Shown here one piece after another: positions 1,111 to 64,000 of a DNA stretch of 64,000 nt. The DNA lies in contig OZ037773.1 in assembly GCA_964035545.1 (NCBI GenBank), positions 1,765,751-1,829,750 on the forward strand. Direction: 5' to 3'. How positions within the stretch are numbered: the first letter of the stretch is position 1; every line of letters starts with the position of its first letter. A program made the translations under genes and the position numbers. This DNA is from Bugula neritina (Eukaryota > Animalia > Bryozoa). Under the pieces are notes generated by a model. That model was not told where the DNA came from and did no database searches. It saw nothing but the letters and a program-made list of their open reading frames with translations.

Positions 1111-1360
1111 TGTTTTAATATTTTTACAACAATTTAAATATATGAATATAATATGATTGTTGAAGATTAACTTAAATAACTTAAACTCAATGTTGATTCT
1201 AAAAACCATTGTTGCCCACTTCACTTGCAGCAATTTTGTGTACACAGCTAGTAGATTTTATCTTAACATGTACTGTATTGCTATGATTATATTGATGTAA
1301 ATGTAATATTAATATGGATTTTTCTGTATTATTAACTAACCTGTTCTGTATTTTGAACAG

Positions 1361-4300
1361 CATACTAAACCTTGAAGAATTGGGTAAGCAACATTTTCAT
1401 TAAACTACAACATTAAACAATTACAACATATGCTAATGCTATCCAATAAGGTAGATGTTTCTTAGTAATCATATTATTATAATAACTTATATTTACTAAT
1501 GTGTGGGACATATGCACTTACTTATCTCTGCAAGCAGATATTTCTAGTATAGTTCTCATTATAAAAACTATATAGTTTGAATTTACTCTCGTTTGTTATA
1601 CTTACTATAGTTTATAACTGTTACTGTTAGAAAGTATGATTCTAGAGGCTTGTGGTAAAGACTTGCTGTGTGCAGCATGTTAATATAGTACTAATTTCAG
1701 TAGCAATGAGTGTATCTGCAGTATTTATTAATATATATTCTAGTACTAATCTATACCATAGCTAAGAGCTATTGAGTCACAACTATATGTAAAGTATATT
1801 ATATCGTTTTTATGATTAAAAACTGAATTAATAGGATTCCATATTTCGAAAAACAGAGTATTTATATTTAGTAATGTTACTGTATTGAATATAATAAACT
1901 TATTTACTCGTTTAACTGACTACGAATCTGTTTTGTGTAGTATAAACTACTATCAGCAGTTCGCTATGGTCGGGTGGTTTTGTTTGGGAATTTATATTGT
2001 TTGTGTATTGATACGCGAGGTTCTTAATTAGCTTCCCCTAAATGCGCAATCAAAATGTTCCGCATGTTGAGAGAGGATAACTCCAGTTGCGCAAACAATT
2101 TTCAAGCACGCGCAAGCACAAAGAAAAATTTTCGCTTGCGCATTTAGGAGACGCAGTTACGAAGAAACTCGCGTAGCAATACACAAACAATATAAATTCG
2201 AAAACCAAAATCACCTGACCGTAATGACCCGAGGAGCGTAGTTTTATAGTACACAAAGCAATTTTGCTGTCATTTAAATGAGTAAATAAGTTTATTATAT
2301 CCAATATAGTATGAAGCAGCAATACTAAATATATAATACATATATTATTTATGCACGAACTGAGAGAGTGTAGCATGCAGTCTGACCATTTCTAGAATTC
2401 TATTTATAGCACATTCTATGCATATGAGAAACTGAAAGCTTTTACCATAACTTAAACTATTAAATGCCTTTCTGTTATAATTACAGATAAATGTTTCCGT
2501 GTTGAGAAACCCAAGTCAGTTCTGCAAAGGTTTATAGGATATTTGTAAGTAAATTTAACTATAAATATTCGTACATGAACATCAGCTATAATTTTTACAA
2601 CTTTCTAACAAAAGCAGATACTATTCTGATGCAATATTGCAGGACTTAGGTATTTCACAGGTTGCGTGGTTTTATATATTGAATAGGTGTAAAAAGGATG
2701 CTCCAAAACCTGTTGGTTATAAAAACAACGGAGTCTTTTTTAATTTAATATTTATGAAAGCATATTTCTAAAAACTGTAGACTGTTGCTTTTCCCAATTA
2801 GGAATTGTTTAAATTTTTTATTTGGTAATATTTTAGTTATGATGTTGACCCTCCACATATTCCAAATACATTGGAAGGTAAATTTTCTAGTTTCTGTTTT
2901 GTTTTTACAAATTTTTTCTAAACCTACATGCGTTATCACACTGTCTGCCTATGTCTATTTGAATTATCCTGTTTTAAACTAACCCAGATTTATGAATGTT
3001 TTCACTGATGTTGCTAGTAATACCTATACATTATTGGATAATATTAGTTAGAGTTGAATGAAGGGTTATGAGTTTGTGATAGATTGTTGTGATATTTGCT
3101 TGCAGTCATGAGTTTCTATACTAATGCGTGTCTAATATAGTCAGCTAACTTGTGTATGTTAAGAAGCAGGTTGTAATATATAATCTAATGTGTAACCTTG
3201 CAGTATGTTGGAGTTATTGTCTCAGGCTAATCCTAAAGACGGGCTCACAGGCTAATATTATAATAGATTATCTCCAGTTGGATGGGTGAGTGGAGAATAA
3301 ATTCCTACTGAACCATGTCTGGTTATACTCTAAACAATTACCTCCATTTAAAAAAAAATAAAGTTGCCAAGAAGGTGCTAAATTATTTATCTTGTAGCTT
3401 GCAATATTTTTGTTATTATAAAAGCGGATGTCACTTGCAAAAGTTGGAATAATTATTTTAGCAAGCTTTATAGAAAAGTGCTTTTTCCAGAAGCAAAGTT
3501 TGACCCAACAAAAACACTCCCCTTTTCGTCACACAAATAGAAATCTTCAGTTTTTATATTTCAGAATGGCTTATATCAGAGAGATCCTGTTTCTTACCAT
3601 TGTGACTCTAATAATAGTGACTGTCAAAAGACGTAAACAGAAAGTGTCAGACAACTCCAATCCAAAAGTGTCTGGGATGTTATCTCGCAGCACCGAGACT
3701 TCCTGTCCACTAAAAACTCATACTGGGTGTCAGAGTGAGTTATTATGTGTGTTATAAATTAGTATAACATAACGTGATATAATATAGGCTATTTAAATAT
3801 AAGATAATACATAAGATATAATATAGTGTAATGCAGTACCATAAAATATAATATAAAATAATTTGATGCAATATTCTATGTCACATGTAGTACTTATGTG
3901 TTGTAGTAGTATGATGATATTATATTATACTATAATAATGATATAATGTGTTATAAAATTAATTTGCATATATCATATTCTGACATTATTAGTTGCATAG
4001 TGTAGCAAAACATGACATGATAATTGCATGTAACTGTAAAAAAATGGGTGTAGCAGGCCTTTGGATTTAACCTTCACATCAATAAAGTCGATTATTGTTG
4101 AAAATGTATAAATTATAAAGGAAAAACATTTGAAAAAGTGATAATCAGAAATGTGACTTAGCAAAAGGTCTATGCCAAGATGTACTTCATTTCTTTTCCT
4201 TTGTAGAGCCTGTTCATGCATGTAGATGGTTTTTTTACTCATTAAAAACTTTTCTATTTTTTAGCTGATGTCAATCTCGCAAAAGAAAAGCCATCCATAA

Positions 4301-6597
4301 AGACTACAACAGCTTTCACACAAACAGTGGTGAAGGAAACTTGCGGAATAGCCATTCAAACAAACAGCAAAGTGGTTTGTGATGCTTCAAGTCAAAGTAG
4401 AAATGAGACCCGTGAAGTTGGCAGTCAAGGAGTTGCCACATCTACTGCGAATGAATACACAGAAACCAGTATGCGATATACTCAGGATGGGAAAACTCAA
4501 ACCAGTGTCTCTTCTACTCAAGACGGAAACACCCAGACAAATGTTGTTTTAGATCTTCAAACCACTGGCACTCAAAGTAAGCATTTTTATTAAACAATTA
4601 TAGAGAAAGATGTCTTTTAAGAACTTTAATGTTTAGATTCAAATAAAAAATTTTCATGATAGTTGTTTTGCTCTAAATAAAACAAACTAAATAAAACTTT
4701 TGAGAATAAAAGTAATATATGTTTAACTTTAGCCACTAACCCAGTCAACTCAAATGACGGAGGCCAGCAGAATCTGAAAATCTCAGATGAAGTCCATTTT
4801 CAGAGTGACAAGTGTCAATTAAAAGCCGCTGGTAACTCAACATCTCAAGGGCAACCAATTCCAGCGTCAACAACCAGCAGCAAAAAGGCGAAAAACAAGC
4901 GAAGAAACCGAAATATGACAGCGCTTTCCTGTCTCGACCAGTTTTTTAAGCAAAGAACACCCCAGAATAAAAATGCTCCTACAGATTCAAGCTACACGAG
5001 TGTGTCAGTCACAGGAACTAAGTCAGGAGACAACCATGATGACTCCGTAAACCTTACTGTCTCCTTAACCACAATTACTACATCAGTAGACAAGGAGGTA
5101 GAAGTTAAAAACCTTCAAGTTTCTTCTATGGCCGGAAAAGAGACACCCGTGATGAAAAAAGAAGCTAAGGTTTCTGATAATGTTGAGAACAACAACTCAA
5201 AGTCAACAACAGCAATCCCTGAGATGAAGGCAGCACCAGCTAATGATGAGATTGATTTAAAAATCACTATGAGTGCACAGAAACTTTCTCAAGCTAGAGC
5301 CGATCTTGAGGAATTGAAGACAAGAACTTTTGTCAATGAAATAATCAATAATATTGTTATAGATGCAACAAAAGACTTGTTTAAGCCTAGTCTGGGTTCA
5401 GAAAATGAAGACATCAGAGCTACTGAAGAAGATGAACAAGATTCATTAGAATATGACAGATTATACATCCATACATTGCCAACGATAGAGGAAGAAGAAT
5501 GGGAAGTTGATATACCAGCAACTTATGCGAGTGTTTCCAAAAAATATGTTTTGGATGAAGCAATAAAGTCTATGGCTGAACTTGCCTCCTTGACAGATTC
5601 ATTTTTGAATGACGTTTCAGCAAGAAGAAGTTCAGCTGATGTGATTGGCTCAGGAGTCTCAAGACGCACTGACAATGATCTACAAGTTGACCTAGATACT
5701 CAAGATGACAGATGGGAAACATCTTCTGTAGATTCTTTTGAGGTAAGTTGATATATTCAACATAAAACTATTTTTATATTTTAAGGAAACAGATAGTATG
5801 TTTTAAATTTTGGCAAATTTGAGTGATTTAGCTTAATTATACAATTTTTTGTGAATTTTTTTGCTCAAAAATTGGCTAATACTGTCATACAAACATCAAG
5901 AGTTCTGGTCTTCAAGGTTCAACTACAAAATATAAAAACTTTGTGGTAAAAATTTATTGTTACTCAAAAATAGTATAACTCCCAAGTTTTGATTTTTCAA
6001 AGGAAAATGAGAGAAAAATAAAAACTGATTATCAAATCAGAAGACAACTCCAGCTAAGCCTGTGTTCCAGTGAGACTGATGTATCCTGCTCCTGTATGAG
6101 AAGAGTTGGTGAGTAGATAGGACTATTATACAGCTAAATATTAGCATCACTTGATAATGAGCTGAATATATCTGATAAATTGGAGCTTACTGATGATACC
6201 TGCTGCATGTACATGTTCCGTTACTTAGCAGTTCATAAGAGCGAGTTGTAATATTCTTGCCCATGATCATGTATAGAATGAAATATAGAGATACTATCCC
6301 TGTGATTTTTGATCGCAATTTGACCGAAAACTTTATTCATACCACTTCATATTTTGAAATATATTATAATTGTATTTTACACTACGTTCATAAAAGTTTG
6401 TTGGTCGGCTAAGATATAATATATAATCTAATAACTTCACTTATTTCTATGCTGCTGTAGGTGGTGCTCACTCAATGAAAAAATCTAAAATACCGAGACC
6501 AGTGACATCAGCTGGTTCTCTCGCACCTTTAAAGAAGAAAATCTATTCTCAAAAGCAAAGATCGCTTATCCCTGTTCGCAGCTCTGTCTCTAAATGA
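1361..6597 (+). CDS. Orphan membrane-anchored scaffold gene, copy 1 (no clear exon 1; single internal module). Exons 1361-1383, 2487-2544, 2837-2877, 3204-3285, 3565-3734, 4265-4576, 4733-5742, 6003-6108, 6461-6597
   Basis: All exons bounded by AG/GT, phases chain without stops to TGA 6595-6597; differences from copies 2/3 in the small exons are often synonymous (ctt/ctc, gaa/gag, ttg/ctg, acg/act, ttg/tta). 577 aa if started at ATG 3566. Confidence 0.75.
1878..2311. mobile_element. Fold-back element / MITE with long (~175-bp) imperfect terminal inverted repeats, TA at both ends (intron 2 of scaffold gene copy 1)
   Basis: Left arm tactgtattgaatataataaacttatttactc...ctaaatgcgcaatcaaaat mirrors right arm ttttcgcttgcgcatttag...gagtaaataagtttattatatccaatatagta; CpG-richer than flanks; no coding capacity. 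Confidence 0.8.
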
Positions 6598-7933
6598 CTC
6601 GGCATGTAATGACAAGGCAGCAAGGCATAGTTCTTTACATAGAAATAGTTTACTAATGTCAAGTATAGAAACTATTACCCATGTGAAAACTGTCAATTAA
6701 CTCTTAAAATTTCAAACTGTCAATTTTTTCACATATATAGGTAGTTTCTATTCTCAGTGTTAGATTGAGATCAACATTGGAAATATTGCTAAATTTGAAA
6801 ACTGACAATAGTAACTTTGTAGGGGTGATGTTCTCAGTTTAAAAAAATCTAAAAATCTTGAAAAAAAATTTAATTTTCATTTATTCAATTATGTTTTCTA
6901 AACATTAAATGACAAAATTTTAGCCTTTCTCTTTTTAGCAAGATCTCTAGATGCCCAGAATTAAAATATAAGAAGAATTATATTATAAATTATCAACATT
7001 TTCAAACAGTGTGGGTCTTTCATGAGTAGGCTGCATTCACCTCATTTATGATAAAAAAATATTTTTTGCTCCATGTAATGATTGACTAAATACTATTTAC
7101 AATTAATTGTTTCTATTTATAAAAAAAATCAAATCTCCAAAAAAAAATTGTTCAAGTGTAGCATTGCCAAATATTTTCTTTTTGAAACTATACTATAAGT
7201 TATGATATATCCTGCTATTGTGATATTGTATAAATATAAATATTATTTTATTAGTTGGTACTGAAATTCAAAAAAATCTGGAAAAAAAATTATAACTTTA
7301 TTTTTTCAATTGTGCTTTTTAAACAGTAAATGACAACCTTTTAAAATTTCTGTCCTAAGAAAAATCTCTATAGATCTGCCTAATGTAAAAAAGAAGAGTA
7401 ATGGACTGTAAACAAATGCTATAACTCTCTAAATCCTCTATCTTCTTTTGTTATTATATTTCTCTTGCTCATGAAATAAATGTTACATCTATTTGTTCTC
7501 CCTGAGGCTTGATTAAATAACTATTATGGAGTATTTTTTGTTTATTAAATTATCAGATTATTTTAAAACCAGTTGAAAATCTGTAATATTTTTGCTTTTC
7601 GTAGTTTTACCAGTAAATGGCTGTATATCTGTAATATGATACTTATTATTTGAAACTAATAAATGATTCATTAGAAACAAAAGCCTATTACAGTTTTTAA
7701 ATGTTACTGATCCCAGCTTTGCAAATGATTCCCTTGCATTATTCAAACAAAATACTATAGCTTTTGCACTTTATAATGGTTCTTGATTGGTTGAAAGTTC
7801 TACTCTGATTCTCAAAACACATATATACATGTCTGTAACCGATGCTGCACTTCATTTACACTATAAAGACTTGTCTCTGATTTTGACAGTCATAAATATA
7901 TTTAGCCAAAGATCATGTTGAAAACACACAGCA

Positions 7934-10900: not shown

Positions 10901-11834
10901 AACCCTGACAGAAAGAGTTTTCTTAAAAGCAGATTATATAAAGTACTTATTCATATGTGGCACAGGAGCAATTATGATTTGATGCTTGTCCTAGCATCAC
11001 CAAGGTCTTTACTGGAAATCTAACCTATGACTTCGAGTTACTAAGCCAAACACGCTAATTACCCTTAGACCTGCTCTCTGCATTGCATTACTTGATAATG
11101 AGTCATCAATAAATTGGTGAATATGCTGGAAAACTAGTTGGAAAAAAATATTGCAAAATATTTTATCATGACATAAGTTTATTATTTACTAACAACTTGA
11201 AAGCTTGATAAAATATTTTTACATATTATTAAGCAGTTGGTGATTATCAAACTAATATCTTAAAAAGTAAATGTGAATTACACTATGAATATAAGGTTCT
11301 TATGTTATTATAATATATGTGCTAAAGTCTCTACCACAAAACAGGACATATCTATTCACCTTAATTCTTGATTTTTATTCGACTCTGCCTTTTCACTTGC
11401 AGCCAGTAGAATCTAAAAAAGAAATTAACAAACTCCAACAACGATGTATTAGACAAAGTTGATTGCATTTCATAATTTCACAATATACAAAGAAGTTTTT
11501 GTAAAGTTTTATGTAAGTGTTATTTTAAAAAGTCTAATAGACTGATTTAAAATTCTTATTTCAGTCAATTTAGTATAAGATTTTATAAAACTGTAAGTAT
11601 CAAATGTAAGAAAAAACATGCAAATATTATATTTTATACACTTCATAGGCTTGTCTAGATATACTTAAATTTTCTACGTAAGTTCCTCAGCTTAATAAAC
11701 TAAACTTTATAGCAATTATCAAAGATCTATACAAACCAATAGTAAACAATAGCAATCCTATTATTGTAACTACACAAGTTAAGTTAATAAAATGATATAC
11801 TTACAGCAAAAACAAACTAATTTCTCAATATCAT
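7934..11834 (-). pseudogene. Phospholipase B1-like (SGNH/GDSL lipase) pseudogene, copy 1; recognisable exons 9809-9969, 8780-8954, 8379-8443, probable 5' exons 11805-11834 and 11360-11412, probable last exon 7934-8066
   Basis: KKYSLENYVENIQAALDYLHANLPKTLVNFIEM and LVSNGRYDTKKVFTVVIQPFLRD match PLB1-family ALDILHxExPRxxVN and SGRYDxxxDFTVVxQPF motifs; GDSL block I exon absent, DCxH exon deleted, 2-nt frameshift in 8379-8443, TAG in codon 6 of the putative first exon. Confidence 0.82.
10002..10790 (-). pseudogene. NHL-repeat / beta-propeller-like pseudo-exon nested between the 5' exons and lipase exons (unit 1 only)
   Basis: Reconstructed across one frameshift and three stops: VFHMERDG...GFTQVNNTHVVVVDRDRHCLYVLHR...AETCGSGGNKNG..RLFYPRGVKVDIRNPGKLLVTDEFNNALRSV..LKNPRGLLWANQELLVTN..VVAG..QFTYQHEI..DLYVG; FxxPxG...LLVTDxxNxxLR is the NHL blade pattern; ends at G|GTAAGT donor. 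Confidence 0.75.
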
Positions 11835-12222
11835 TTTGTACTCAAACAGCCTTCTTAGTACTGAAAGGTTCAGAATACAGAATGCTCACTTTAGTAGCAA
11901 ATACGTTGTATTAGAGTTTCTCAATTATTACCAACTCACATGTGTTTCTTCCCACATATAGTCTATCATTTAGATATTCAGGATACTGCTTACAATGGGC
12001 AACTCATAAAGTCACAGTTACTATTGAAGCTATTATTTGATACTTTAAGGGTGAAATGAAGAAATAATATATTTGTATTTGGCTATAGATTTTGGTTATC
12101 AAACTGAAAAGTAAGCTATATGGTATCTCAGTAATGATAGAAATACTTGCAAGATAGATTAGAGGATTCTTTTTGAAGTACTTTTTGTCTTGCTTAGATC
12201 TAAACAGCTTCAATTCGTAGCC

Positions 12223-15200
12223 ATGGATAGGAGGTTCAGCAAAAGAATGCCATTGCCGAGCATAAAGTGAGAGCATTATATCTCAATCTATATGTTCGGC
12301 AGTTGTTTCATGGGTTGTCTACAGGTAGCCTATCAGTCAAAACACTAATTCTTACTTTTACAATTTATATTTGTTGTTTTTGTTAGAGCAGGCGATGAAA
12401 TGAAGTTTTCCAATAAGATATATTTGTAAAAACTCAAAGAAGTCTATATATTTATTGTAATTCCTTATAATTTCTAATTCTAATTTTCATAAATAGATAA
12501 TTTTAAAATGTGCAATAAAATTTTAAAATTCCCCTTTGCTATATATAATGATATTATGCTTTTAGTAAGTATTTGGCAAATAAATTGGCCAGCAATCGGC
12601 TAACATTTAAATATTCATGGCCGCATGTGGGATAAAAATATCACCATGTAAAAATATATGAATTTGTTCAACAAAATATTATTTAACTGGGAATTAAAGC
12701 TAAAAAATTGAATTAATATATTAGTTTTATGCTATCAAATATTTCTATAATAATTCTAACATATGAATATAATATGATTGTTGAAGATTAACGTAAATAA
12801 CTTAAACTCAATGTTGATTCTAAAAACCATTGTTGCCCACTTCACTTGCAGCAATTTTGTGTACACAGCTAGTAGATTTTATCTTAACTTGTACTGTATT
12901 GCTATGATTATATTGATGTAAATGTAATATTAATATGGATTTCTATGTATTATTAACTCACCTGTTCTGTATTTTGAACAGCATACTAAACCTCGAAGAA
13001 CTGGGTAAGCTATATTTTCTTTATACTACAACATTAAACAACTACAGCATATGCTAATGCTATCCAAGGTAGATGTTTTGTAGTCATCATAATTACTAAT
13101 GTGTGAGACATATATGCACTTACTTGTCTCTGCAAGCAGATATTTCTAGTCTAGTTTTTATTATAAAAACTGTATAGTATAAATTTACTTTCGTTTGTTA
13201 TTATACTTGCCATAGTTTATAACTGTTACTGTTATAAAGTATGATTCTACAGGCTTGTGGTGAAGACTCGCTGTGTGCAGCATGTTATTATGATACTAAT
13301 TTCAGTAGCAATGGCCAATGAGTGTGTCTGCAGAATTTTTAAATATTCATTCTAGTACTAATCTATACCATAGCTAATCGATATTGAGTGACAACTATAT
13401 TACGTAAAGTATATAATATAGTTTCTCTGATTAAAAACTGAATTAAGAGAACTCAATATTTCGAAAATATAAAGTATTTATATTTAGTATTGATACTATA
13501 TTTGATATAATAAACTTATTTACTCATTTAAATCACTGCAAATTATTTGCTTCGTGTAGTATAAACTACTATCAACAGGTCGTTATGGTCGGCTGATTTT
13601 GTTTGGGAATTTTTACTGTTTGTGTATTGCGACGCGAGGTTCTTAGTTGGCGTCTCCTAAATGCGCAAGCAAAATGTCCCGCATATTGGGGAGGATAACT
13701 CCAGTTGTTGTAAGGTTACGTGAAGCACTTTCTAGCACGCGCAAGCACAAAGGGAATATTTTTGCTTGCGCATTTAGGAGACGCTCATTACGGAGAAACT
13801 CGTGTAGCAATACATAAACAATATAAATTCCAAAACAAAATCATCCGACCATAACGACCTGATGGGCATAGTTCATACTACGCAAAGCAAATTTGCAGTC
13901 ATTTATGACTAAGTAAATAAGTTTATTATTATATCCAATATAGTATGAAGCAGCAATACTACATATATAATATATATATTATTTATGCACAAATTGAGAG
14001 AGTGTAGCATGCAGTCTGACCATTTCTAGAATTCTATTTATAGCACATTCTATGCATATGAGAAACTGAAAGCTTTTACCATAACTTAAACTATTAATGG
14101 CTTTCTGTTATAATTACAGATAAATGTTTCCGTGTTGAGAAACCCAAGTCAGTTCTGCAAAGGTTTATAGGATATTTGTAAGTAAATTCAAGTATAAATA
14201 TGCGTACATGAGCATCAGCTATTAATTTTTACAACTTTTTAACAGAAGTAGCTACTATTCTGATGCAATATTGTAGGACTTAGGTATTTCACAGGTTGCA
14301 TGGTTTTATATATTAAATAGGTATAAAAAAAGGATGCTCCAAAATTATGATATGAATTGGTTATAAAAACAACGCAGTCTTTTTTAATTTAATATTTATG
14401 AAAGCATATTTCTAAAAACTGTTGACTGTTAATTTTCCCAATTAGGAACTGTCTAAATTTTTTATTTGTTAATATTTTAGTTATGATGTTGACCCTCCAC
14501 ATATTCCAAATACATTGGAAGGTAAATTTTCTAGTTTCTGGGTTGTTTTTACGAATCTCTTTCTACGTGTGTTATCACACGGTCTGCCTATGTTTATTTG
14601 AATTATCCTGTTCTAAACTAACTTAGTTTTATGAATGTTATCACTGATGTTGCTAGTAATACGTATACATTACTGGATAATTCTAGTTAGAGTTGAATGA
14701 AGGGTTATGAGTTTGTGATAGATTGTTGTGATATTTGCTTGCAGTCATGAGTTTCTATACTAATGCTGTCTAATATAGTCAGCTAACATGTATATGTTAA
14801 GAAGCAGGTTACAATATATAATCTAATGTGTAACCTTGCAGTATGTTGGAGTTATTGTCTCAAGCTAATCCTAAAGACTGGCTCACAGGCTAATACTATA
14901 ATAGATTATCTCCAGTTGGATGGGTGAGTGGAGAATAAATCCCTACTGAACAATGTCTGGTTATGCTCTAAACAATTATCTCCTTTCAAGAAACTAAAGT
15001 TGCCAAGAATTAGTGCTAAATTATTTATCTTGTAGCTTGGAATATTTTTGTTATTATAAAAGCGGATGTCACTTGCAAAAGTTGGAATAATTATTTTAGC
15101 AAGCTTTATAGAAAAGTGCTTTTTCCAGAAGCAAAGTTTGGCCCAACAAAAACACTCCCCTTTTCGTCACACAAATAGAAATCCTCAGTTTTATATTTCA

Positions 15201-18200
15201 GAATGGCTTATATCAGAGAGATCCTGTTTCTTACCATTGTGACTTTAATAATGGTGACTGTCAAAAGACGTAAACAGAAAGTGTCAGACGACTCCAATCC
15301 AAAAGTGTCTGGGATGTTATCTCGTAGCACCGAGACTTCCTGTCCACTAAGAACTCATACTGGGTGTCAGAGTGAGTTATTATGTGTGTTGTAAATTAGT
15401 ATAACATAACATGATATAATATAGTTTATTTGACTATAATATAATACATAAGATATAATATAGTGTAATGCAGTACCATACAGTATAATATAAAGTAATT
15501 TGATGCAATATTCTATGTCACATGTCGTACTGTTGTGTTGTAGTAGTATGCTGATATATTATTATATTATAATAATAATATAATGTGTTATAAAATTAAT
15601 TTATATATATCATATTCTAACGTTATTAATTGCATAGTGTAGCAAAACATAACATAACAGTTTCACGAGACTGTAAAAGTTTAGTGTAGGAAGCCTTTGT
15701 ATCTAACTTTCTCATTAATAAAATCTACTATTGTTGAAAATTTAAAAATTATACAAGAAAAATACTTGGAAAAGTAATAATCAAAAATGTGGCTGAGCAA
15801 AAGGTCTATGCAATGATGTGTTTTTTATTTTGGAGAGCCTGTTCATGCACGCAGATGTTTTTTACTCATTAAAAACTTAATTCTATTTTTTAGCTGATGT
15901 CAATCTCACAAAAGAAAAACCATCCATGAAGACTACAACAGCTTTCACACAAACAGTGGTAAAGGAAACTTGCGGAATAGCCATTCAAACAAAGAGCAAA
16001 GTGGTTTGTGATGCTTCAAGTCAAAGAAGTAGAAATGAGACTCGTGAAGTTGGCAGTCAAGGAGTTGTCACATCTACTGCGAATGAATACACAGAAACCA
16101 GTGTGCAATATACTCAGGATGGGAAAACTCAAACCAGTGTCTCTTCTACTCAAGACGGAAACACCCAGACAAATGTTGTTTTAGATCTCCAAACCACTGG
16201 CACTCAAAGTAAGCATTTTTATTAAATAATTATAGAGAAGGATGCCTTTTAAGAACTTTAATGTTTAGATTCAAATCAAGCATTTTCATGATAGTTGCTT
16301 TGCTTTAAATAAAACAAACTAAATAAATTTTTTGAGAATAAAAGTAATATATATGTTTACCTTTAGCCACTAACCCAGTCAACTCAAATGACGGAGGCCA
16401 GCAGAATCTGAAAATCTCAGATGAAGTCCATTTTCAGAGTGACAAGTGTCAATCAAAAGCTGTCGGTAACTCAACATCTCAAGGGCAACCAATTCCAGCA
16501 CCAACAACTAGCAGCAAGAAAGCGAGAAGAAAACGAAGAGACCGAAATATGACAACGCTTTCCTGTCTCGACCAGTTTTTTAAGCAGAGAGCCTTTCAGA
16601 ATAAAAATTCTCACACAGATTCGAGTAACACGAGTGTGTCAGTCACAGGAACTAAGTCAGGAGACAGCGATGACGACTTTGTGAACGCTAGTGTCTCCTT
16701 AACCACAAATACTACATCACTCAACGAAGAGGTGGAAGTTAAAAACTCTCAAGTTCCTTCTATGGCCCAGAAAGAGACACCCAAGGTGAAAAAAGAAACT
16801 AAAGCTTCTGATAATGTTGAGAACAACAACTCAAAGTCAACAACCGTAATCCCTGAAATGAAGGCAGCACCAGCTAATGATGGCACTGAGCTAAAAATCA
16901 CTAAGAGTGCACAGACACTTCTTCGAGCTGAAACCAATGTCGAGGAATTAAAAAAGAGAGCTCTTGTCAATGAAATAATGAACAATATTGTAACAGATGC
17001 AACAAAAAAGTTGTTTAAACGTGACTTGGGCTCCATCATTGAAGACAGGCGGCCAGCACCTAACCCAGTCAACTCAAATGACCAAGGCCAGAAAGATCTA
17101 ACAACCCCAGAGAATATTTATATTCAGAGTGACAAGTGTCTATTAAAAGCAATCTGCTACCCAACATCTCAAGGGCCACCGATTCCAGCGTCAACAACCA
17201 GCAGCACAAAGGCGAAAAGCAAGCGAAGAAACCGAAATATGACAACGCTTTCCTGTCTCGACCAGTTTTTTAAGCAAAGAACACCCCAGAATAAAAATGC
17301 TCTTACAGATTCAAGCTACACGAGTGTGTCAGTCACAGGAACTAAGTCAGGAGACAGTTATGACGACTCCGTAAACTCTAGTGTCTCCTTAACCACAATT
17401 ACCACATCAGTAGACAAGGAGGCAGAGGTTAAAAATCTTCCAGTTTCTTCTATGGCTGGAAAAGAGACACGGCCCGTGATGAAAAAGGAAGCTAACGCTT
17501 CTGATAATGTTGAGAACAACAATTCAAAGTCAACAACAGCAATCCCTGAGATGAAGGCAGCACCAGCTAATGATGAGATTGATTTAAAAATTACTATGAG
17601 TGCACAGAAACTTTCTCAAGCTAGAGCCAATCTTGAGGAATTGAAGACAAGAACTTTTGTCAACAAGATAATCAATAATATTGTTATAGATGCTACAAAA
17701 AAGTTGTTTAAGCCTAGTCTGGGTTCAGAAAATGAAGACATCAGAGCTACTGAAGAAGATGAACAAGATTCAGTAGAATATGACAGATTCTACATCCATA
17801 CGTTGCCAACGATAGAGGAAGAAGAATGGGAAGTTGATATACAAGCAACTTATGCGAGTGTTTCCAAAAACGATGTATTGGATGAAGCAATAAAGTCTAT
17901 GGCTGAACTTGCCTCCATGACAGATTCATTTTTGAATGACATTTCAGCAAGAAGTAGTTCAGCTGATGTGATTGACTCAGGAGTACCAAGACGTACTGAC
18001 AATGATCTACAAGTTGACCTAGATACTCAAGATGACAGATGGGAAACATCTTCTGTAGATTCTTTTGAGGTGAGTTGATATAATCGACATAAAATTATTT
18101 TTTATTTTGAGGAAACAAATAGTATGTTTTAAATTTTGGCAAATCTGAGTGATTTAGTTTAATTATACAAGGTTTTGTTAATATTGTTGCTCAAAAATTG

Positions 18201-18905
18201 GCTAATACTGTCATACAAACCTTAAAAGTTCTGGTCTTCAAGGTTCAACTGCAAAATATAAAAAAATTGTGGTAAAAATTTACTTATACTCAAAATAGTA
18301 TAACTCTCAAGTATCAATTTTTCAAAGGATAATGAGAGAAAAATAAAAACTGATTATCAAATCAGAAGACAACTCCAGCTTAGCCTGTGTTCTAGTGAAA
18401 CTGATGTATCCTGCTCCTGTATGAGAAGAGTTGGTGAGTACATAGTACTAGTATACAGCTAAATATTAGCATCACTTGATAGTGAGCTGAATATATCTGA
18501 TGAATGGGAGTTTACTGATAATACCTGCTGTACATGTTCCGTTACTTAGTACTTCATTAGAACAAGTTGTAATATTCTTGCTCATGACCATATATAGAAT
18601 CGAATATAGAAATATTTTGATCGCAATTTAACCGAAAACTTTATTCTTACCACTTCACATCTTGAAATATATTATAATTGTATTTTGCACTAAGCTCATA
18701 AAAATTCTTTGATTTGCTAAGATATAATATATAATCTAATAACTTTACTTATTTCCATGCTGCTGTAGGTGGTGCTCACTCAATGAAGAAATCTAAAATA
18801 CCGAGACCAGTGCCATCAGCTGGTTCTCTCGCACCTTTAAAGAAGAAAATCTATTCCCAAAAGCAAAGATCGCTTATCCCTGTTCGGAGCTCTGTCTCTA
18901 AATAA
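12223..18905 (+). CDS. Orphan membrane-anchored scaffold gene, copy 2 (892 aa). Exons 12223-12266, 12982-13004, 14120-14177, 14481-14521, 14842-14923, 15202-15371, 15894-16208, 16367-18069, 18328-18433, 18769-18905
   Basis: gccATGG start (MDRRFSKRMPLPSI), ten GT-AG exons in compatible phases, stop TAA; exon lengths match copy 3 exactly (44,23,58,41,82,170,315,1703,106,137). Exon 1 assignment is less certain than exons 2-10. Confidence 0.82.
13494..13945. mobile_element. Same fold-back MITE, copy in unit 2
   Basis: Homologous to 1878-2311 at the same intronic position; arms mirror each other. Confidence 0.8.
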
Positions 18906-20234
18906 CTCGGCATATAATGGCAAGGCAGCAAGGCATTGTTCTTTACAAAGAAATAGTTTACCAATGTCAAGTATAGAAACCATTACCCATGTGAAAACTA
19001 GCTCTCAATTAACTCCTAAAATCTCAAACTATCAATTTTTTTCACATATAGGCAGTGTCTATTCTCAGTGTTAGATTGAGATCAACATTGGAAATATTGC
19101 TAAATTTGAAAACTGACAATAGTAACTTTGTAGGGCTGATGTTCTTAGTTTAAAAAAATCTAAAAATCTTGAAAAAAAATTAATTTTCATTTATTCAACT
19201 ATGTTTTTTAAACATTAAATGACAAAATTTTAGCTTTTCCCTTTTTAGCAAGATCTCTAGATGCCCAGAATTGAAATATAAGAAAACCTATATTTTAAAT
19301 TATTAACATTTTCAAACAGTGTGGGCCTTTCATGAGTAAGCTGCATTCACCTTGTTTATGATAAAAAAATATTTTTTGCTCTATGTAATGAATGGCTACA
19401 TATTCAATTTACAACCATTTGATAAAAAAAATCAAATCTCAAAAAAAATTATTCAAATGTAGCATTACTGATTATTTTTTGTTGAAACTATACTATAAGT
19501 TATGATATTGTGATATTGTAGAAATAATATTATTCTATTATAAGTATTTACTGAAATTCAAAAAATTCTCAAAAAAATATAATTTTATTTATTCATTTGT
19601 GCTTTTTAAACAGTAAATGACAACCTTTTAAAATTTCTGACCTAAGAAAAATCTTTATAGATCTGCCTAATGTAAAAAAGAGTATGATATAGACAGTAAG
19701 GAAATGCTATAACTCTCTAAATCCTCTATCTTCTTTTGTTATTTTATTTCTCTTGCTCATGAAATAAGCGTTACATCTATTTGTTTTACCCGAGGATTGA
19801 TTAAATAACTATTTTGGAATATTTTTTTGTTTATTAGATTATCAGATTCTTTTAAAACCAGTTGAAAATCTGTAATTTTTTTTGCTTCTCTTAGTTTCAC
19901 CAATAAATGACTGTATATCAGTTTGAAAGCTGTAATATGACACTTATTATTTGAAACTAATAAATTATTCGTTAGAAAAAAAAACCTATTACAGTTTTTA
20001 AAGTTGATGATACCAGCTTTGCAACTGATTCCCTCATATAATTCAAACAAAATACTGTAGCTTTTGCACTTTACGCATGGTTCCTGATTAGTTGAAAGTT
20101 TTACTCTGATTCTCAATACACACATACATGTTTGTAATCAAAGGTACACTATATGCATTTACACTATAAAGACTTGCTTCTCACAGTCATATAATATTAT
20201 ATTTAGCCAAAAGTCATATTGAAAACGCACAGCA

Positions 20235-23207: not shown

Positions 23208-23558
23208 TTTGTACTTAAGCAACCTACTTACTACTGAAAGATTCAGAATACACAATGTTTATTATAGTGACAAATACTTTATTACCAACTCACATATCTT
23301 TTGTCCCACATTTAGTCTTATCTTTCGGGTATTTAAGATACTGCATAAAATGGTCAACTCATAAAGTAGCAGTATAACTCATTGAAACTATTATTGGATA
23401 CGTTAAGGGTGAAATAAAAAAATATATATTTGTATTTGGCTATAGCTTTTGGTTAGCAAGCTGAAAAGTAAGCTATATGGTATCATAGTAATAATAGAAA
23501 TACTTGAAGGATAGATTAGAGGATTCATTCTAAAGCTAAGCAGCTTTTATTCTTAGCC

Positions 23559-26500
23559 ATGGATAGGATTCGCGGTAAAAGAATGCCAATGCTGAGCATA
23601 AAGTGAGAGCATTATATCTCAGTCTGTGTACAGCAGTTGTTTCAGGGGTTGTCTACTCATTAGAACGAAACATTCAAATATTCATGGCCGCATGTGGGAT
23701 AAAAATATCACCATGTAAAAATATATAAATTTGTTCAACAATATATTATTTAACTGGGCATCACAGCTGAAAAATGAATTAATATATTAGTTTTATGCTA
23801 TCAAATATTTCTATAATATTTCTAACATATGAATATAATATGATTGTTGAAGATTAACGTAAATAACTTAAACTCAATGTTGATTCTAAAAACCATTGTT
23901 GCCCACTTCACTTGCAGCAATTTTGTGTACACAGCTAGAAGACTTTATCTTAACTTCTACTGTATTGCTATGATTATATTGATGTAAATGTAATATTAAT
24001 ATGGATTTCTCTGTATTATTAACTCACCTGTTCTGTATTTTGAACAGCATACTAAACCTTGAGGAACTGAGTAAGCTATATTTTCATTATACTACAACAT
24101 TAAACAACTACAACATATGCTATTGCTATGCAAAGTAGATCTTTCATAGTCATCATATTATTATGGCAACTTATATTTACTAATGTGTGGGACATATGCA
24201 CTTACTTATCTCTGCAAGCAGATATTTCTAGTCTAGTTCTCATTATAAAAACTGTATAGTATAAATTTACTCTGTTTGTTATTATACTTGCCATAGTTTA
24301 TAACTGTTACTGTAACAAAGTATGATTCTACAGGCTTGTGGTAAAGACTTGCTGGGTGCAGCATGCTAATATAGTACTAATTTCAGTAGCAATGGCCAAT
24401 GAGTGTATCTGCAGAATTTTTAAATATTTATGCTAGTACTAATCTATAGCATAGCTAAGAGCTATTGAGTGACAACTATATCATGTAAAGTATATAATAT
24501 ATTTTCTATGATTAAAAACTGAACCAATATGAGAACTCAACATTTCGAAAAACAGAGTATTTATATTTAGTATTGATACTGTATTGAATACAGTAAACTT
24601 ATTTACTCATTTAACTGACCACGAATCTGTTTCGTGTAGTATAAACTACTATCCGCAGGTCGTTATGGTCGGGCGATTTTGTTTGGGAATTTACTTTGTT
24701 TGTGTATTGCTACGCGAGATTCTTAACTGGCGTCTCGTAAATGCGCAATCAAAATGTCCCGCATATTGGGGAGGATAACTCCAACTATGCGAAGCACTTT
24801 CTAGCGCGCACAAAGGAAATATTTTTGCTTGCGCATTTAGGGGACGCCCATTACGGAGGAACTCGCGTAGCAATACACAAACAATTATAAATTCCAAAAC
24901 AAAATCAACCGACCATAACGACCTGATGGGCAAAGTGCATACTACGCAAAGCAAATTTGCAGTCATTTAAATGAGTAAATAGGTTTATTATATCCAATAT
25001 AGTATGAAGCAGCAATACTACATATATAATATATATACTATTTATGCATGAATTGAGAGAGTGTAGCATGCAGTCTGACCATTTCTAGAATTCTATTTAT
25101 AGCACATGCTATGCATATGAGAAACTGAAAGCTTTTACCATAACTTAAACCATTAAATACCTTTCTGTTATAATTACAGATAAATGTTTTCGTGTTGAGA
25201 AACCCAAGTCAGTTCTGCAAAGGTTTATAGGATATTTGTAAGTAAAATTAACTATTTAAGCTATAATTTTTTACGTCTTTTTAACAAAAGCAGATACTAT
25301 TCTGATGCAATATTGTAGGACTCAATTATTTCACAGGTTGCATGGTTTTATACATTAAATAGGTGTAAAATAGGATTCTCCAAAATTATGATATAAATTG
25401 GTTACAAAAACAACTCAGTCTTTTTTAATTAAAATATATTTATGAAAGCATATTTCTAAAAACTGTAGACTGTTAAAATTTTTCCAATTAGGAATTGTCT
25501 AAATTTTTTATTTGTTAATCTTTTAGTTATGATGTTGACCCTCCACATATTCCAAATACATTGGAAGGTAAATTTTCTAGTTTCTGTTTTGTTTTTACAA
25601 ACTTTGTCTAAACCTACATGCGTTATGACACTGTCTGCCAATGTTTATTTGAATTATCCTGTTTTAGTTTTATGAATGTTTTCACTGATGTTGCTAGTAA
25701 TACCTATACATTATTGAATGATATTAGTTAGAGTTGAATGAAGGGTTATGAGTTTGTGATAGATTATTGTGATATTTGCTTGCAGTCATGAGTTTCTATA
25801 CTGATGCGTGTCTAATATAGTCAGCTAACATGTATATGTTAAGAAGCAGGTTGTAATATATAATCTAATGTGTAACCTTACAGTATGTTGGAGTTATTGT
25901 CTCAGGCTAATCCTAAAGACGGGCTCACAGGCTAATACTATAATAGATTATCTCCAGTTAGATGGGTGAGTGGAGAATAAATTCCTACTGAACCATGTCT
26001 GGTTATGCTCTATACAATTACCTCCATTTAAAGAAAATAAAGTTGCCAAGAAGGTGCTAAATTATTTATCTTATAGCTTGGAATATTTTTGTTATTATAG
26101 ACGCGGATGTCACTTGCAAAAGTTGGAATAATTATTTTAGCAAGCTTTATAGAAAAGTGCTTTTTCCAGAAGCAAAGTTTGACCCAACAAAAACACTCCC
26201 CTTTTCGTCACACAAATAGAAATCCTCAGTTTTTATATTTCAGAATGGCTTATATCAGAGAGATCCTGTTTCTTACCATTGTGACTCTAATAATGGTGAC
26301 TGTCAAAAGACGTAAACAGAAAGTGTCAGACGACTCCAATCCAAAAGTGTCTGGGATGTTATCTCGTAGCACCGAGACTTCCTGTCCACTAAGAATTCAT
26401 ACTGGGTGTCAGAGTGAGTTATTATGCGTGTTGTAAATTAGTATAACATAACGTGATATAATATAGTCTATTTAAATGTAAGATAATACATAAGATATAA

Positions 26501-29500
26501 TATAGTGTAATGCACTACCATAAAATATAATATAAAATAATTTGATGCAATATTCTATGTCACATGTAGTACTTATGTGTTGTAGTAATAAGATGATATT
26601 ATATTATACTATAATAATGATATAATGTGTTATAAAATTAGTTTGCATATATCATATTCTGACATTATTAGTTGCATAGTGTAGCAAAACATGACATGAT
26701 AATTGCATGTAACTGTAAAAAAAATGGGTGTAGCAGGCCTTTGGATTTAACCTTCTCATGCATCAATAAAGTCGATTATTGTTGAAAATGTATAAATTAT
26801 AAAGGAAAAACATTTGGAAAAGTGATAATCAGAAATGTGACTAAGCCTAGGGCCACACGGTGCGTATTTTCGCATGCGAAAATTGAAATCACAAGTAGCA
26901 AAGGTGTCCACTGTGCGCGTTGAGAAAACCGTCGCACTTGTCGCTCTGCATTTTCAACGCAAGTGCGAATCGTCTCTGTCGTCGTCATCTAATTGGCTGG
27001 TAGCTATTCAGCGAGCTTAATTTCTTTGTTTAGTGCTATATTCTAGTAAATTGCGTTTTATTGAAAGCGAGTGCGATTTAAAAATGAAATCTTTATTTAT
27101 CACGCATCAATGACGCTACAGTGGACACCTTTGCTACTTGTGATTTTAATTTTCGCATGCGAAAATATGCACAGTGTGGCCCTAGGCTTAGCAAAAGGTC
27201 TATGCCAAGATGTACTTCATTTCTTTTCCTTTGTAGAGCCTGTTCATGCATGTAGATGGTTTTTTTACTCATTAAAAACTTTTCTATTTTTAGCTGATGT
27301 CAATCTCACAAAAGAAAAGCCATCCATAAAGACTACCACAGCTTTCACACAAACAGTGGTGAAGGAAACTTGTGAAATGGCCATTCAAACAAACAGCAAA
27401 GTGGTTTGTGATGCTTCAAGTCAAAGAAGTAGAAATGAGACCCGTGAAGTTGGCAGTCAAGGAGTTGCCATATCTACTGCGAATGAATACACAGAAACCA
27501 GTGTGCAATATACTCAGGATGGGAAAACTCAAACCAGTGTCTCTTCTACTCAAGACGGAAACACCCAGACAAATGTTGTTTTAGATTTTCAAACCACTGG
27601 CACTCAAAGTAAGCATTTCTATTAAACAATTGTAAAGAAAGATGCCTTTTAAGATTCAAATCAAAAATGTTTATGATAGTTGTTTTGCTGTAAATAAAAC
27701 AAACTAAATAAAACTTTTGAGAATAAAAGTAATATATGTTTAACTTTAGCCACTAACCCTGTCAACTCAAATGACGGAGGCCAGCAGAATCTGAAAATCT
27801 CAGATGAAGTCCATTTTCAGAGTGACAAGTGTCAATTAAAAGCCGCTGGTAACTCAACATCTCAAAGGCAACCAATTCCAGCGTCAACAACCAGCAGCAA
27901 GAAAGCTAGAAGCAAACGAAGAGACCGAAATATGACAACGCTTTCCTGTCTCGACCAGTTTTTTAAGCAGAGAGCCTTCAAGGATGAAAATTCTCGTACA
28001 TATTCGAGTAACACGAGTGTGTCAGTCACAGGAACTAAGTCAGGAGACAGCGACGACGACTCCGTGAACTCTAGTGTCTCCTTAGCCACAAATACTACAC
28101 CAGTAGACAAGGAAGTAGAAGTTGAAGACTCTCAAGTTCCTTTTGTGGCTCACAACAATCAACCCATGACGAACAAACAAGCAAAGGTTTCTGATAATGT
28201 TGAGAACAACAACTCGAAGTCAACAACCGCAATCCCTGAGATGAAGGCAGCACCAGCTAATGATGAGATTGAGCTGAAAGTCACTAAGAGTGCAGAGAAA
28301 CTTTTTCAAGCTCAAACCAATGTCCAGGAATTAAAGAAAAGAGCGTTTTTCCATGAAATAATCAACAATATTGTAACAGATGCAACAAAAAAATTGTTTA
28401 AACGTAATTTGAGCTCCGTCATTAAAGACAGCCAGCCAGCACCTAACCCAGTCAACTCAAATGACCAAAGCCAGAAGGATCTAACAACCCCAGAGAATAT
28501 TTATATTCAGAGTGACAAGTGTCTATTAAAAGCAATCTGCTACCCAACATCTCAAGGGCCACCAATTCCAGCGTCAACAACCAGCAGCACAAAGGCGAAA
28601 AACAAGCGAAGAAACCGAAATATGACAGCACTTTCCTGTCTCGACCAGTTTTTTAAGCAAAGAACACCCCAGAATAAAAATGCTCTTACAGATTCAAGCT
28701 ACACGAGTGCGTCAGTCACAGGAACTAAGTCAGGAGACAGCCATGACGACTCCATAAACCCTAGTGTCTCCTTAACCACAATTACTACATCACTAGACAA
28801 AGAGGTGGAAGTTAAAAACTCTCAAGTTTCTTCTATGGCCGGAAAAGAGACACCCGTGATGAAAAAAGAAGCTAAGGCTTCTGATAATGCTGAGAACAAC
28901 AACTCAAAGTCAACAACAGCAATCCCTGAGATGAAGGCAGCACCAGCTAATGATGAGATTGATCTAAAAATCCTTATGAGTGCACAGAAACTTTCTCAAG
29001 CTAGAGCCAATCTTGAGGAATTGAAGACAAGAACTTTTATCAATGAAATAATTAATGATATTGTTACAAATGCAACAAAAACGTTGTTTAAACCTAATCA
29101 GGGTTCAGAAAATGAAGACATCAGAGCTACTGAAGAAGATGAACAAGATTCAGTAGAATATGACAGATTCTACATCCATACATTGCCAACGATAGAGGAA
29201 GAACAATGGGAAGTTGATATACCAGCAACTTATGCGAGTGTTTCCAAAAACGATGTATTGGATGAAGCAATAAAGTCTATGGCTGAACTTGCCTCCATGA
29301 CAGATTCATTTTTGAATGACATTTCAGAAAGAAGTAGTTCAGCTGATGTGATTGACTCAGGAGTACCAAGACGTACTGACAATGATCTACAATTAGTTGA
29401 CCTAGATACTCAAGATGACAGATGGGAAACATCTTCTGTAGATTCTTTTGAGGTAAGTTGATATAATCGACATAAAACTATTTTTATATTTTGAGGAAAC

Positions 29501-30301
29501 GGATAGTATGTTTTAAATTTTGGCAAATCTGAGTGATTTAGCTTAATTATACAATGTTTTGTGAATATTGTTGCTCAAAATTTGGCTAATACTGTCATAC
29601 AAACATTAAGAGTTCTGGTCTTCAAGGTTCAACTACAAAATATAAAAAATTTGTGGTAAAAATTTACTTATACTCAAAAATAGTATAACTCTCAATTTTT
29701 AAAGGATAATGAAAGAAAAATAAGAACTGATTATCAAATCAGAAGACAACTCCAGCTTAGCCTGTGTTCTAGTGAAACTGATGTATCTTGCTCCTGTATG
29801 AGAAGAGTTGGTGAGTAGATAGGACTATTATACAGCTAAATATTAGCATCACTTGATTGTGAGCTGAATACATCCGATAATTAATTGGAGTTTACTGATA
29901 ATACCTGCTGTACATGTTCTGTTACTTAGTAGTTCATGAGATTGAGTTGCAATATTCTTGCTCATGATCATGTATAGAATGAAATAATATAGAAATATCA
30001 TCCCTGTGATTTTTGATCGCAATTTAACCGAAAACTTTATTCATACCACTTCATATCTTGAAATCTATTATAATTGTATTTTACACTACGTTCATAGAAG
30101 TTCAATGATCTGCTAAGATATAATATATAATCTAATAACTTTACTTATTTCTATGCTGCTGTAGGTGGTGCTCACTCATTGAAGAAATCTAAAATACCAA
30201 GACCAGTGACATCAGCTGGTTCTCTCGCACCTTTAAAGAAGAAAATCTATTCGCAAAAGCAAAGATCGCTTATCCCTGTTCGCAGCTCTGTCTCTAAATA
30301 G
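23559..30301 (+). CDS. Orphan membrane-anchored scaffold gene, copy 3 (892 aa). Exons 23559-23602, 24048-24070, 25180-25237, 25527-25567, 25884-25965, 26244-26413, 27294-27608, 27750-29452, 29705-29810, 30165-30301
   Basis: Same exon structure and phases as copy 2, start MDRIRGKRMPMLSI, stop TAG; open throughout. Confidence 0.82.
24577..25004. mobile_element. Same fold-back MITE, copy in unit 3
   Basis: Homologous to 1878-2311 at the same intronic position. Confidence 0.8.
26845..27187. mobile_element. 343-bp MITE, probably PIF/Harbinger-type, present only in unit 3
   Basis: ~70-bp TIRs gcctagggccacac...ggtgtccactgt / acagtggacacc...gtgtggccctaggc; flanks TAA (26842-26844) and TTA (27188-27190); empty site atgtgac-tta-gcaaaagg at 4151-4168 in unit 1. 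Confidence 0.9.
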
Positions 30302-34443: not shown

Positions 34444-34795
34444 TTTGTACTTAAGCAACCTACTTACTACTGAAAGATTCAGAATACACAATGTTTATTA
34501 TAATGACAAATACTTTATTACCAACTCACATATCTTTTTTCCCACATTTAGTCTTATCTTTCGGGTATTTAAGATACTGCATAAAATGGTCAACTCATAA
34601 AGTAGCAGTATAACTCATTGAAACTATTATTGGATACGTTGAGGGTGAAATAAAAAAATATATATTTGTATTTGGCTATAGCTTTTGGTTAGCAAGCTGA
34701 AAAGTAAGCTATATGGTATCATAGTAATAATAGAAATACTTGAAGGATAGATTAGAGGATTAAGTTCTAAAGCTAAGCAGTTTTAATTCTTAGCC

Positions 34796-34839
34796 ATGGA
34801 TAGGAGGCTCAGCAAAAGAATGCCATTGCTGAGCATAAA
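34796..34839 (+). pseudogene. Stranded copy of exon 1 of the scaffold gene with no downstream exons in the window
   Basis: gccATG GAT AGG AGG CTC AGC AAA AGA ATG CCA TTG CTG AGC ATA AA|gtgaga (MDRRLSKRMPLLSI), homologous to 12223-12266 and 23559-23602; homology to the unit stops ~35293. Confidence 0.7.
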
Positions 34840-63960: not shown

Positions 63961-64000
63961 AAAACTGGAGAAGCTTTTCAACTTTTCTATGAAAAATTAA

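Follow-up and report, generated by a model that had tools for sequence, protein, structure and literature searches.

Does an unrecognised gene that occurs three times in tandem encode a membrane-tethered signalling scaffold at microtubule ends, or were its short motifs simply inherited by young copies of a fast-evolving gene? The question is raised by a 64,000-nucleotide stretch of Bugula neritina DNA (in the following, the window; G000:C9:1,765,751-1,829,750 of an assembly of 216 Mb with 31% G+C, the contigs of which are given as C-numbers), where a first inspection of the letters (the sequence-only reading) had proposed, at positions 12223-18905, an orphan triplicated gene for a protein with a transmembrane (TM) anchor, an LC8 array, a helix like that by which AKAPs dock protein kinase A (PKA), a PP2A-B56 site and two SxIP motifs. 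Based on sequence comparison, a spliced protein-coding gene is present in the window. That it is a real gene of a recently expanded, lineage-restricted family and encodes a single-pass membrane protein with a disordered cytoplasmic docking tail is proposed tentatively, with confidence a little short of even; the four-partner tether to microtubule plus ends is a hypothesis, not a finding.

The gene model was obtained by reading the sequence with canonical GT-AG joins and then by an alignment of eight copies, namely the three units of the window (A, B and C), two copies at C9:7.87 Mb (C9a and C9b), those at C3:8.96 Mb and C6:10.78 Mb, and the JGI metagenome contig L013. In copy B, nine GT-AG exons lead on the plus strand from the ATG at 12935 to the TAA at 18903-18905 and form one open reading frame (ORF) of 876 amino acids (aa), with the following parts (lengths in nucleotides, nt):

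12935..13004, plus strand: coding part of exon 1', MDF(Y/S)VLLTHLFCILNSILNLEEL; hydrophobic, signal-peptide-like N-terminus; ATG and GT donor in 8/8 copies
14120..14177, plus strand: exon 2, N-terminal domain; AG/GT, 58 nt in all copies; sharp conservation peak
14481..14521, plus strand: exon 3, N-terminal domain; AG/GT, 41 nt in all copies; conservation peak
14842..14923, plus strand: exon 4, N-terminal domain, EVCWSYC...DYLQLDG; AG/GT, 82 nt in all copies; single open frame
15202..15371, plus strand: exon 5; predicted TM helix ILFLTIVTLIMVTV at 15221-15262, then KRRKQK at 15263-15280; kept in all copies
15894..16208, plus strand: exon 6, Thr/Gln-rich; sites of TQT or IQT type; internally repeated 12-mer TSVxxTQDGxTQ
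16367..18069, plus strand: exon 7; two modules of ~230 aa (16372-17034 and 17062-17727) and an acidic C-terminal domain
16963-17016 and 17656-17709, plus strand: amphipathic helix cores in exon 7, with a third helix at 17869-17946
17803-17838, plus strand: acidic stretch of exon 7, LPTIEEEEWEVD
18379..18433, plus strand: exon 8, Cys-rich mini-exon LSLCSSETDVSCSCMRRV; AG/GT, 55 nt in 8/8 copies
18769..18905, plus strand: exon 9, basic Ser/Pro tail; SKIP at 18792-18803, SLIP at 18870-18881, then TAA
12223..12266, plus strand: first exon of the sequence-only reading, outside the shared gene; 41-49% identity at that place in copies A, C9b and C6

From 13004 on, all acceptors and donors are AG and GT in eight of the eight aligned copies, in which the small-exon lengths (70, 58, 41, 82, 170, 55 and 137 nt) are likewise unchanged. 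Introns have 8-20 variable columns per 20 nt, whereas the number falls to 2-10 in the TM exon and to 0-4 just where exons 1'-3 lie; exon 2 retains 95% aa identity even with a decayed copy on contig C4 (C4a). The 55-nt exon 8 is essential: since exon 7 ends in phase 0 and the last exon is in phase 1, their direct join would read VVLTQ-stop. One of the four TQT sites of copy B is created by the splice 16208/16367. The ten exons proposed earlier do give a single open frame by GT-AG joins, but the same exon set yields 875 aa and not the 892 aa claimed. Nor is that frame open in all copies: the exon starting at ATG 12223 is missing from copies A, C9b and C6 and was rejected, and the ten-exon model is closed in copy A because this exon lies outside the unit common to the three. 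The quoted protein strings were recovered in copy B (ILFLTIVTLIMVTV with KRRKQK at 15221-15280, four TQT, LPTIEEEE at 17803-17826, KKSKIPRP and QRSLIPVR in the last exon) with the exception of the helix VNEIINNIVIDA, which is correct for copy A, copy B having VNKIINNIVIDA and VNEIMNNIVTDA instead.

By self-comparison, copy B belongs to three tandem units of ~11.3 kb and ~90% identity (A, ~1117-12600; B, 12738-23670; C, 23804-35290). Copies A and C, projected from the eight-copy alignment, contain intact ORFs with GT-AG at every site:

1314..6597, plus strand: copy A, 644 aa, single module; exons 1314-1383, 2487-2544, 2837-2877, 3204-3285, 3565-3734, 4265-4576, 4733-5742, 6054-6108 and 6461-6597
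24001..30301, plus strand: copy C, 876 aa, two modules; exons 24001-24070, 25180-25237, 25527-25567, 25884-25965, 26244-26413, 27294-27608, 27750-29452, 29756-29810 and 30165-30301

Starting from the equivalent of ATG 12935, five copies are intact (A, 644 aa; B and C, 876 aa each; C9a, 877 aa; C9b, 871 aa). The "orphan triplicated" gene postulated earlier thus holds for the three units of the window and for the lack of a known family, but not for the genome: the module of the large exon matches 36 places, the family comprises more than 13 loci, with at least five intact and at least eight decayed copies on four chromosome-scale contigs, and relatives occur in DNA of a sibling organism. Full or partial copies outside the window are located at C9:7.87 Mb (two), C3:8.96 Mb (interrupted by one TAG), C6:10.78 Mb (3' half of the large exon deleted), C4:17.55 and 18.0 Mb (two diverged copies), C3:11.78-11.84 Mb (an array) and C3:15.03 Mb (two, truncated). 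Copy C4a (C4:18006000-18015999) has in-frame stops and has lost the helix; its large-exon stops recur at identical positions in the Logan contig L051, which comes from a related organism and is 88% identical at the nt level. C4a is either a pseudogene predating the split of the two organisms or a paralogue with different splicing. The two modules of exon 7 are 82% identical at the nt level; the module is single in the A, C3 and C6 copies and duplicated within one exon in B, C, C9a and C9b. In copy A the start of the module (4738-5400) resembles module 1 and the remainder module 2, consistent with unequal exchange. A mobile element was rejected as an explanation: what is copied, side by side or at scattered places, is the gene together with intergenic DNA, and no ORF for a transposase was seen. 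In the array at C3:11780000-11839999, ~12 stop-ridden units (Thr/Gln exon and module) follow one another every ~1.9 kb on the minus strand; the 5' element described below occurs between them four times on the plus strand, so that the orientation is scrambled relative to the intact genes.

Searches beyond this genome bore out the earlier statement that no protein family is recognisable, as Pfam, Rfam, ESM Atlas and a profile search of 1.84 billion proteins returned no annotated relative. The profile, built from 13 modules, obtained eight matches in the protein set, all of them unnamed ORF fragments from JGI/Logan contigs that contain introns and are 74-88% identical to loci in this genome. With metagenome contigs the same profile gave no match, in a set that may omit records near this genome; a word-based protein search with the 567-aa exon product retrieved one unnamed metagenome ORF alone, ESM Atlas no usable match, and Rfam no match for the window nor, at E<=1, for the 5' element. 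In Pfam, the five exon products gave only sub-threshold or low-complexity matches: ECSCR (PF15820), also a small single-pass protein, is matched over the TM segment alone (13.8 bits versus a cut-off of 27), and Phycoerythr_ab (PF02972) with 23.1 bits over 14 low-complexity residues; both, the sole Pfam matches, were dismissed as chance. In terms of sequence, the family seems confined to a single lineage of bryozoans, probably the Bugula neritina complex, and the term orphan is justified at the level of known families.

Pairwise comparison of the copies by the Nei-Gojobori method gave ratios of nonsynonymous to synonymous substitution (dN/dS) of 0.3-0.6 overall. The N-terminal exons lie at 0.15-0.35 and the two exons at the 3' end (8 and 9) at 0.05-0.3, and dN is below dS in every region and pair bar one pseudogene pair. 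Neutrality is rejected for these two 3' exons (copy B versus the JGI contig, binomial P ~1e-4) and likewise for the whole coding sequence. In consequence, the frame codes for protein under constraint, which is strongest at the two protein ends; the N-terminal domain is the most constrained part of the protein. The intron divergence K amounts to 0.09-0.12 among the close copies (0.09-0.10 for the three window copies), 0.17 to L013 and 0.34 to C6.

The protein starts with MDF(S/Y)VLLTHLFCILNS, which is hydrophobic and signal-like, the stretch encoded by exon 1' being the second most hydrophobic 15-mer of the protein; the top 15-mer is ILFLTIVTLIMVTV (mean Kyte-Doolittle value 2.44), the only strong TM segment. 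Between the two lie ~65 residues with three Cys and without an N-glycosylation sequon, the spliced N-terminal domain comprising 87 aa. As a general rule (positive-inside rule), the basic flank of a TM segment stays cytosolic. The C-terminal flank carries a charge of +4 (KRRKQK), the N-terminal one is acidic with a net negative charge, and together with the hydrophobic N-terminus this arrangement argues for a cytosolic tail. The membrane anchor of the sequence-only reading, a hydrophobic stretch followed by KRRKQK, is accordingly kept as the one strong TM segment of all copies. Behind it follow the Thr/Gln region, one or two modules, the acidic domain, LSLCSSETDVSCSC and the basic tail. This tail of ~540-770 aa, in a protein described before as mostly low-complexity, is indeed rich in Ser and Thr (24% together) and in charged residues; AlphaFold2 (AF2), applied to module and C-domain with a 13-row alignment, gave a mean predicted local distance difference test value (pLDDT) of 42 and helices only at 59-73, 171-215 and 269-303, so that the tail is taken as essentially disordered.

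Topology, any partner and any cellular role of the protein we infer from these features. In the proposed arrangement, a hydrophobic signal-like N-terminus would be followed by ~65-85 aa that form a small conserved domain on the exoplasmic or luminal side; next would come one TM helix, ended by KRRKQK, and a disordered cytoplasmic tail that evolves fast and the module number of which would be altered by unequal exchange inside the exon. The tail might then act as a membrane-anchored docking platform for soluble partners, with two candidate sites: an 18-residue amphipathic helix per module, which could dock in the manner of AKAPs on an RIIa-fold dimer, and the C-terminal basic tail with its two SxIP motifs, which could bind EB-type proteins as in STIM1.

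AKAPs dock through an amphipathic helix of 14-18 residues with a hydrophobic face at positions 2, 5, 6, 9, 10, 13, 14 and 17 (PMC12083921). The module helix F/L-V-N-E-I-I-N-N-I-V-T-D-A-T-K-K-L-F has hydrophobic residues at 7/8 of these register positions (V, I, I, I, V, A, T, L), as expected from the docking pattern noted earlier, with an invariant Thr at position 14, F/L at position 1 and F at position 18; shuffling of the protein yields 0.13 expected matches to the register. AF2 predicts a helix at this site, and changes on its hydrophobic face are conservative. Modelling with the docking and dimerisation (D/D) domain of a PKA regulatory subunit, a check that had been recommended, combined the 46-residue helix region with two copies of the RII-like D/D of the genome (L026:1495-1644:-); contacts agree between the runs to at least 95%, with partner pLDDT of at least 73. 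The score of 0.54, versus 0.02 for the best of three controls, is graded as weak support and lies in a band where a pass is wrong more often than right, save for guesses that were likely from the start. The mark of weak support is reached by 51/78 solved complexes and 2/108 mismatched pairs, but at scores of 0.60 or below by only 5/78 solved complexes and by all four passing mismatches (of 180). The modelled docking thus improves the odds of helix-RII binding a little.

The genome encodes one RI-like (C5:3.44 Mb) and three RII-like PKA regulatory-type genes (C5:12.90 Mb, C4:22.32 Mb and C3:9.96 Mb), each with RIIa docking and cyclic-nucleotide-binding (cNMP) exons. These four are more than we had expected of an invertebrate. 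In the membrane-anchored or tandem-helix AKAPs (AKAP1/D-AKAP1, SKIP/SPHKAP, AKAP220), an amphipathic helix is similarly placed in a disordered membrane-tethered protein, and SKIP and AKAP220 have more than one helix per protein, as members of this family do. There is, however, no sequence homology between AKAPs and this protein, position 14 of its helix is Thr and, unlike in the AKAPs, R-subunit binding is predicted here with weak in-silico support.

EB-binding sites of the form [ST]x[IL]P are expected in a Ser/Pro/basic stretch, with acidic residues absent from the nonamer around them and one or more of the four residues before them basic (PMC4834103). Both C-terminal sites (SMKK-SKIP-RPV and QKQR-SLIP-VRS), for which a basic context had been claimed, pass these published rules; the internal TAIPEM/TVIPEM sites fail them by an acidic neighbour. 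The 46-aa C-terminal tail contains 11 K/R and no D/E and is under purifying selection; two SxIP compare with 0.13 expected in tail shuffles (P 0.005), and both cores are retained in the JGI contig L013 of the sibling organism and in the 65%-identical C4a copy. From its sequence, EB-type binding through the dual-SxIP tail is plausible. STIM1 resembles the protein in its signal-like N-terminus, small luminal part, one TM segment, long cytosolic region and Ser/Pro/basic C-terminal SxIP (PMC4834103). It differs in possessing EF-SAM, coiled-coil and CAD, none of which occurs here, shows no homology and has one SxIP instead of the two candidate EB-binding motifs here.

The LC8 array proposed earlier was confirmed in part. 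Residues 140-250 hold four TQT and one IQT, with 0.58 TQT expected in shuffles (P 0.002), but the flanks break the binding rules and the sites are not fixed: two TQT sites stem from the 12-aa tandem repeat, and site positions turn over in C6 and the JGI contig. At LC8 sites, position -3 tends to be large and -4 polar, with aromatic residues avoided at -2 and hydrophobic ones at +2, and numerous TQT-containing peptides fail to bind LC8 (PMC6607443). TTAFTQTV, the only positionally invariant site, violates these tendencies three times, with Ala at -3, Phe at -2 and Val at +2; in DGKTQTS and DGNTQTN position -3 is Gly, and no site is of the K/R-x-TQT form; multivalency could rescue weak sites. 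Multivalent LC8 clients (ASCIZ, the KANK1 linker, Nup159) likewise present TQT anchors in series, spaced by 10-40 residues, within a disordered region (PMC6607443, PMC10046861, PMC12803091), but in comparison with them the flanks found here fit the preferences poorly and part of the array is the 12-aa tandem repeat.

As to the PP2A-B56 site, a motif that belongs in disordered and preferably acidic or phosphorylatable surroundings, the pattern LxxIxE is present as LPTIEEEE and retained in the intact copies (LATIEEEE in C9a), but is expected 1.6 times by chance in the protein, and the adjoining EEEEWEVD could, we presume, equally be a Trp-acidic motif. Chance matches to many short patterns are to be expected in a disordered tail of 770 aa (shuffles also contain 0.9 SxIP). 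The LC8 and B56 parts of the scaffold model are weak. The argument that four motif classes kept in three diverging paralogues are hard to explain by chance does not stand, because with an intron K of only ~0.09-0.10 the motifs common to the window copies are inherited rather than maintained. Experiments would be worthwhile on two elements, the amphipathic helix and the SxIP tail. Genes for all four partners, PKA R, LC8, EB1 (C2:109828) and B56, occur in the genome. The LC8 encoded on C1 is, residue for residue, Bugula neritina dlc-1 (KAF6032154.1); LC8 is highly conserved, but this exact sequence is named for no other species, and the host is probably this bryozoan or a sibling species. On ten small contigs (C102, C172, C190, C258, C194, C15, C83, C166, C144 and C66), RIIa, LC8 and cNMP-binding domains contain in-frame TAA/TAG, as expected for a co-assembled ciliate with reassigned stop codons.

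Several observations weigh against the proposed membrane-bound docking protein. Its signal-peptide reading is tentative, since a basic n-region and a clear -3/-1 cleavage site are missing. The Thr/Gln exon and the large exon show dN/dS of 0.45-0.8, i.e. the tail evolves fast, which together with the many dead copies fits a weak or changing function. The stretch occurs in a single public run (X1), which extends through introns and exons alike and contains no splice joints, and is therefore DNA. Within the module, the best-conserved 18-residue windows are ENNNSKSTTAIPEMKAAP (0.92) and RRNRNMTTLSCLDQFFKQ (0.91) rather than the helix (0.85), and the best-conserved blocks RRxRNxTxLxxLDxFFKxR and NNSKSTTAIPEMKAAPANDE are left unexplained by the four-partner model; the D/D groove may, moreover, accept any amphipathic helix, and the docking score lies in the unfavourable band given above. 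A rival reading has young segmental duplicates drifting to pseudogenes, with residual open frames and no function kept, of which the stops, frameshifts or deletions in at least eight loci, the large-exon ratios and the DNA nature of X1 would be signs. This we consider unlikely, as five copies keep frames of 644-877 codons over nine exons with all splice sites intact, dN remains below dS save in the one pseudogene pair, and neutrality is rejected for the last two exons as for the whole coding sequence. Improbable, too, is an extracellular or luminal position of the Ser/Thr-rich tail, either as a mucin-like glycoprotein or as a polyprotein cut at RRKRR and KSKRR between the modules, which would make the cytosolic motifs irrelevant. 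While the Ser+Thr content, 12 N-x-S/T sequons, the basic clusters at module boundaries and modules repeated as in precursor proteins are consistent with it, KRRKQK behind the only strong TM segment, the acidic N-side flank and the hydrophobic N-terminus point to a cytosolic tail, and long amphipathic helices with an acidic domain are not the Pro/Thr repeats of a mucin.

Two further readings assign the cytosolic tail a definite function. A membrane-tethered factor freed by proteolysis, with KKARRKRRDRN as nuclear localisation signal and the acidic Trp/Phe/Tyr C-domain as activation-type region, would account for the RR.RN invariant in every module and for the conserved acidic-hydrophobic block EYDRFYIHTLPTIEEEEWEVD; it is a compositional reading, the Pfam scan revealed no DNA-binding or other recognisable domain, and we regard it as highly improbable. 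The full scaffold, in which an organelle membrane would be tethered to microtubule plus ends by two SxIP, dimerised by LC8 and loaded with PKA and PP2A-B56, finds all four motif classes present and all four partners encoded, the SxIP context and the TQT enrichment (P 0.002) in its favour, STIM1 as precedent of a TM protein with SxIP (PMC4834103) and the helix-RII D/D score on its side, subject to the calibration described. It is nevertheless very unlikely, because four simultaneous interactions amount to a product of modest probabilities; beyond that, copies ~10% diverged even in introns void the conservation argument, the invariant TQT breaks three LC8 rules with two others small at -3, and LxxIxE, expected 1.6 times by chance, overlaps the acidic Trp block.

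Directly upstream of the ATG, each copy in the window carries a conserved non-coding element:

12763..12934 (172 nt), plus strand: 5' element, promoter and/or 5' untranslated region (UTR) of exon 1'; also at 1142-1313 and 23829-24000

With 0-2 variable columns per 20 nt in the eight copies, it varies less than any coding exon, and the edges of conservation are sharp (beginning at ~12760 and stopping at the donor 13005). Several upstream ATGs lie within it. It matches 21 places of the genome, some of them without the rest of the gene (C5:8.13-8.38 Mb and C3:22.5 Mb), and may represent a promoter, an element of the 5' UTR or a product of gene conversion. Intron 1 of every copy contains an inverted repeat of ~500 bp, ~74% self-complementary (13466-13980; 1858-2346; 24558-25031), like a foldback insertion or one of the miniature inverted-repeat transposable element (MITE) type predating the duplications. 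Elsewhere in the window, a 30-bp minisatellite at 42469-42743 (92% match, 9.2 copies), the minus strand of which has an open frame (ORF 42414-42737) reading YTLYNITSL over and over, is probably non-coding. At the window end (63389-63961), a two-copy tandem repeat of 285 bp with 100% identity reflects either a duplication of very recent date or an error of assembly.

The solid result is a young, rapidly turning-over gene family that is missing from public protein sets and the gene model of which could be fixed by comparison alone; it is at the same time a clean example that the co-occurrence of motifs in near-identical paralogues is no evidence of function. A more specific proposal, that the family represents bryozoan-private PKA-anchoring membrane scaffolds, with one to three AKAP-type helices gained by intra-exon duplication and with dual-SxIP coupling to EB-decorated microtubule ends, is in our estimation a long shot. 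The major expansion of AKAPs has been placed in vertebrates (PMC12083921). If true, such a PKA/SxIP scaffold would be an independently evolved hybrid of an AKAP and a microtubule plus-end-tracking protein (+TIP) outside the vertebrates, its AKAP- and SxIP-type docking assembled from scratch in a lineage-specific disordered protein and its helix dosage adjusted through duplications within an exon, in a phylum for which hardly any cell biology exists.

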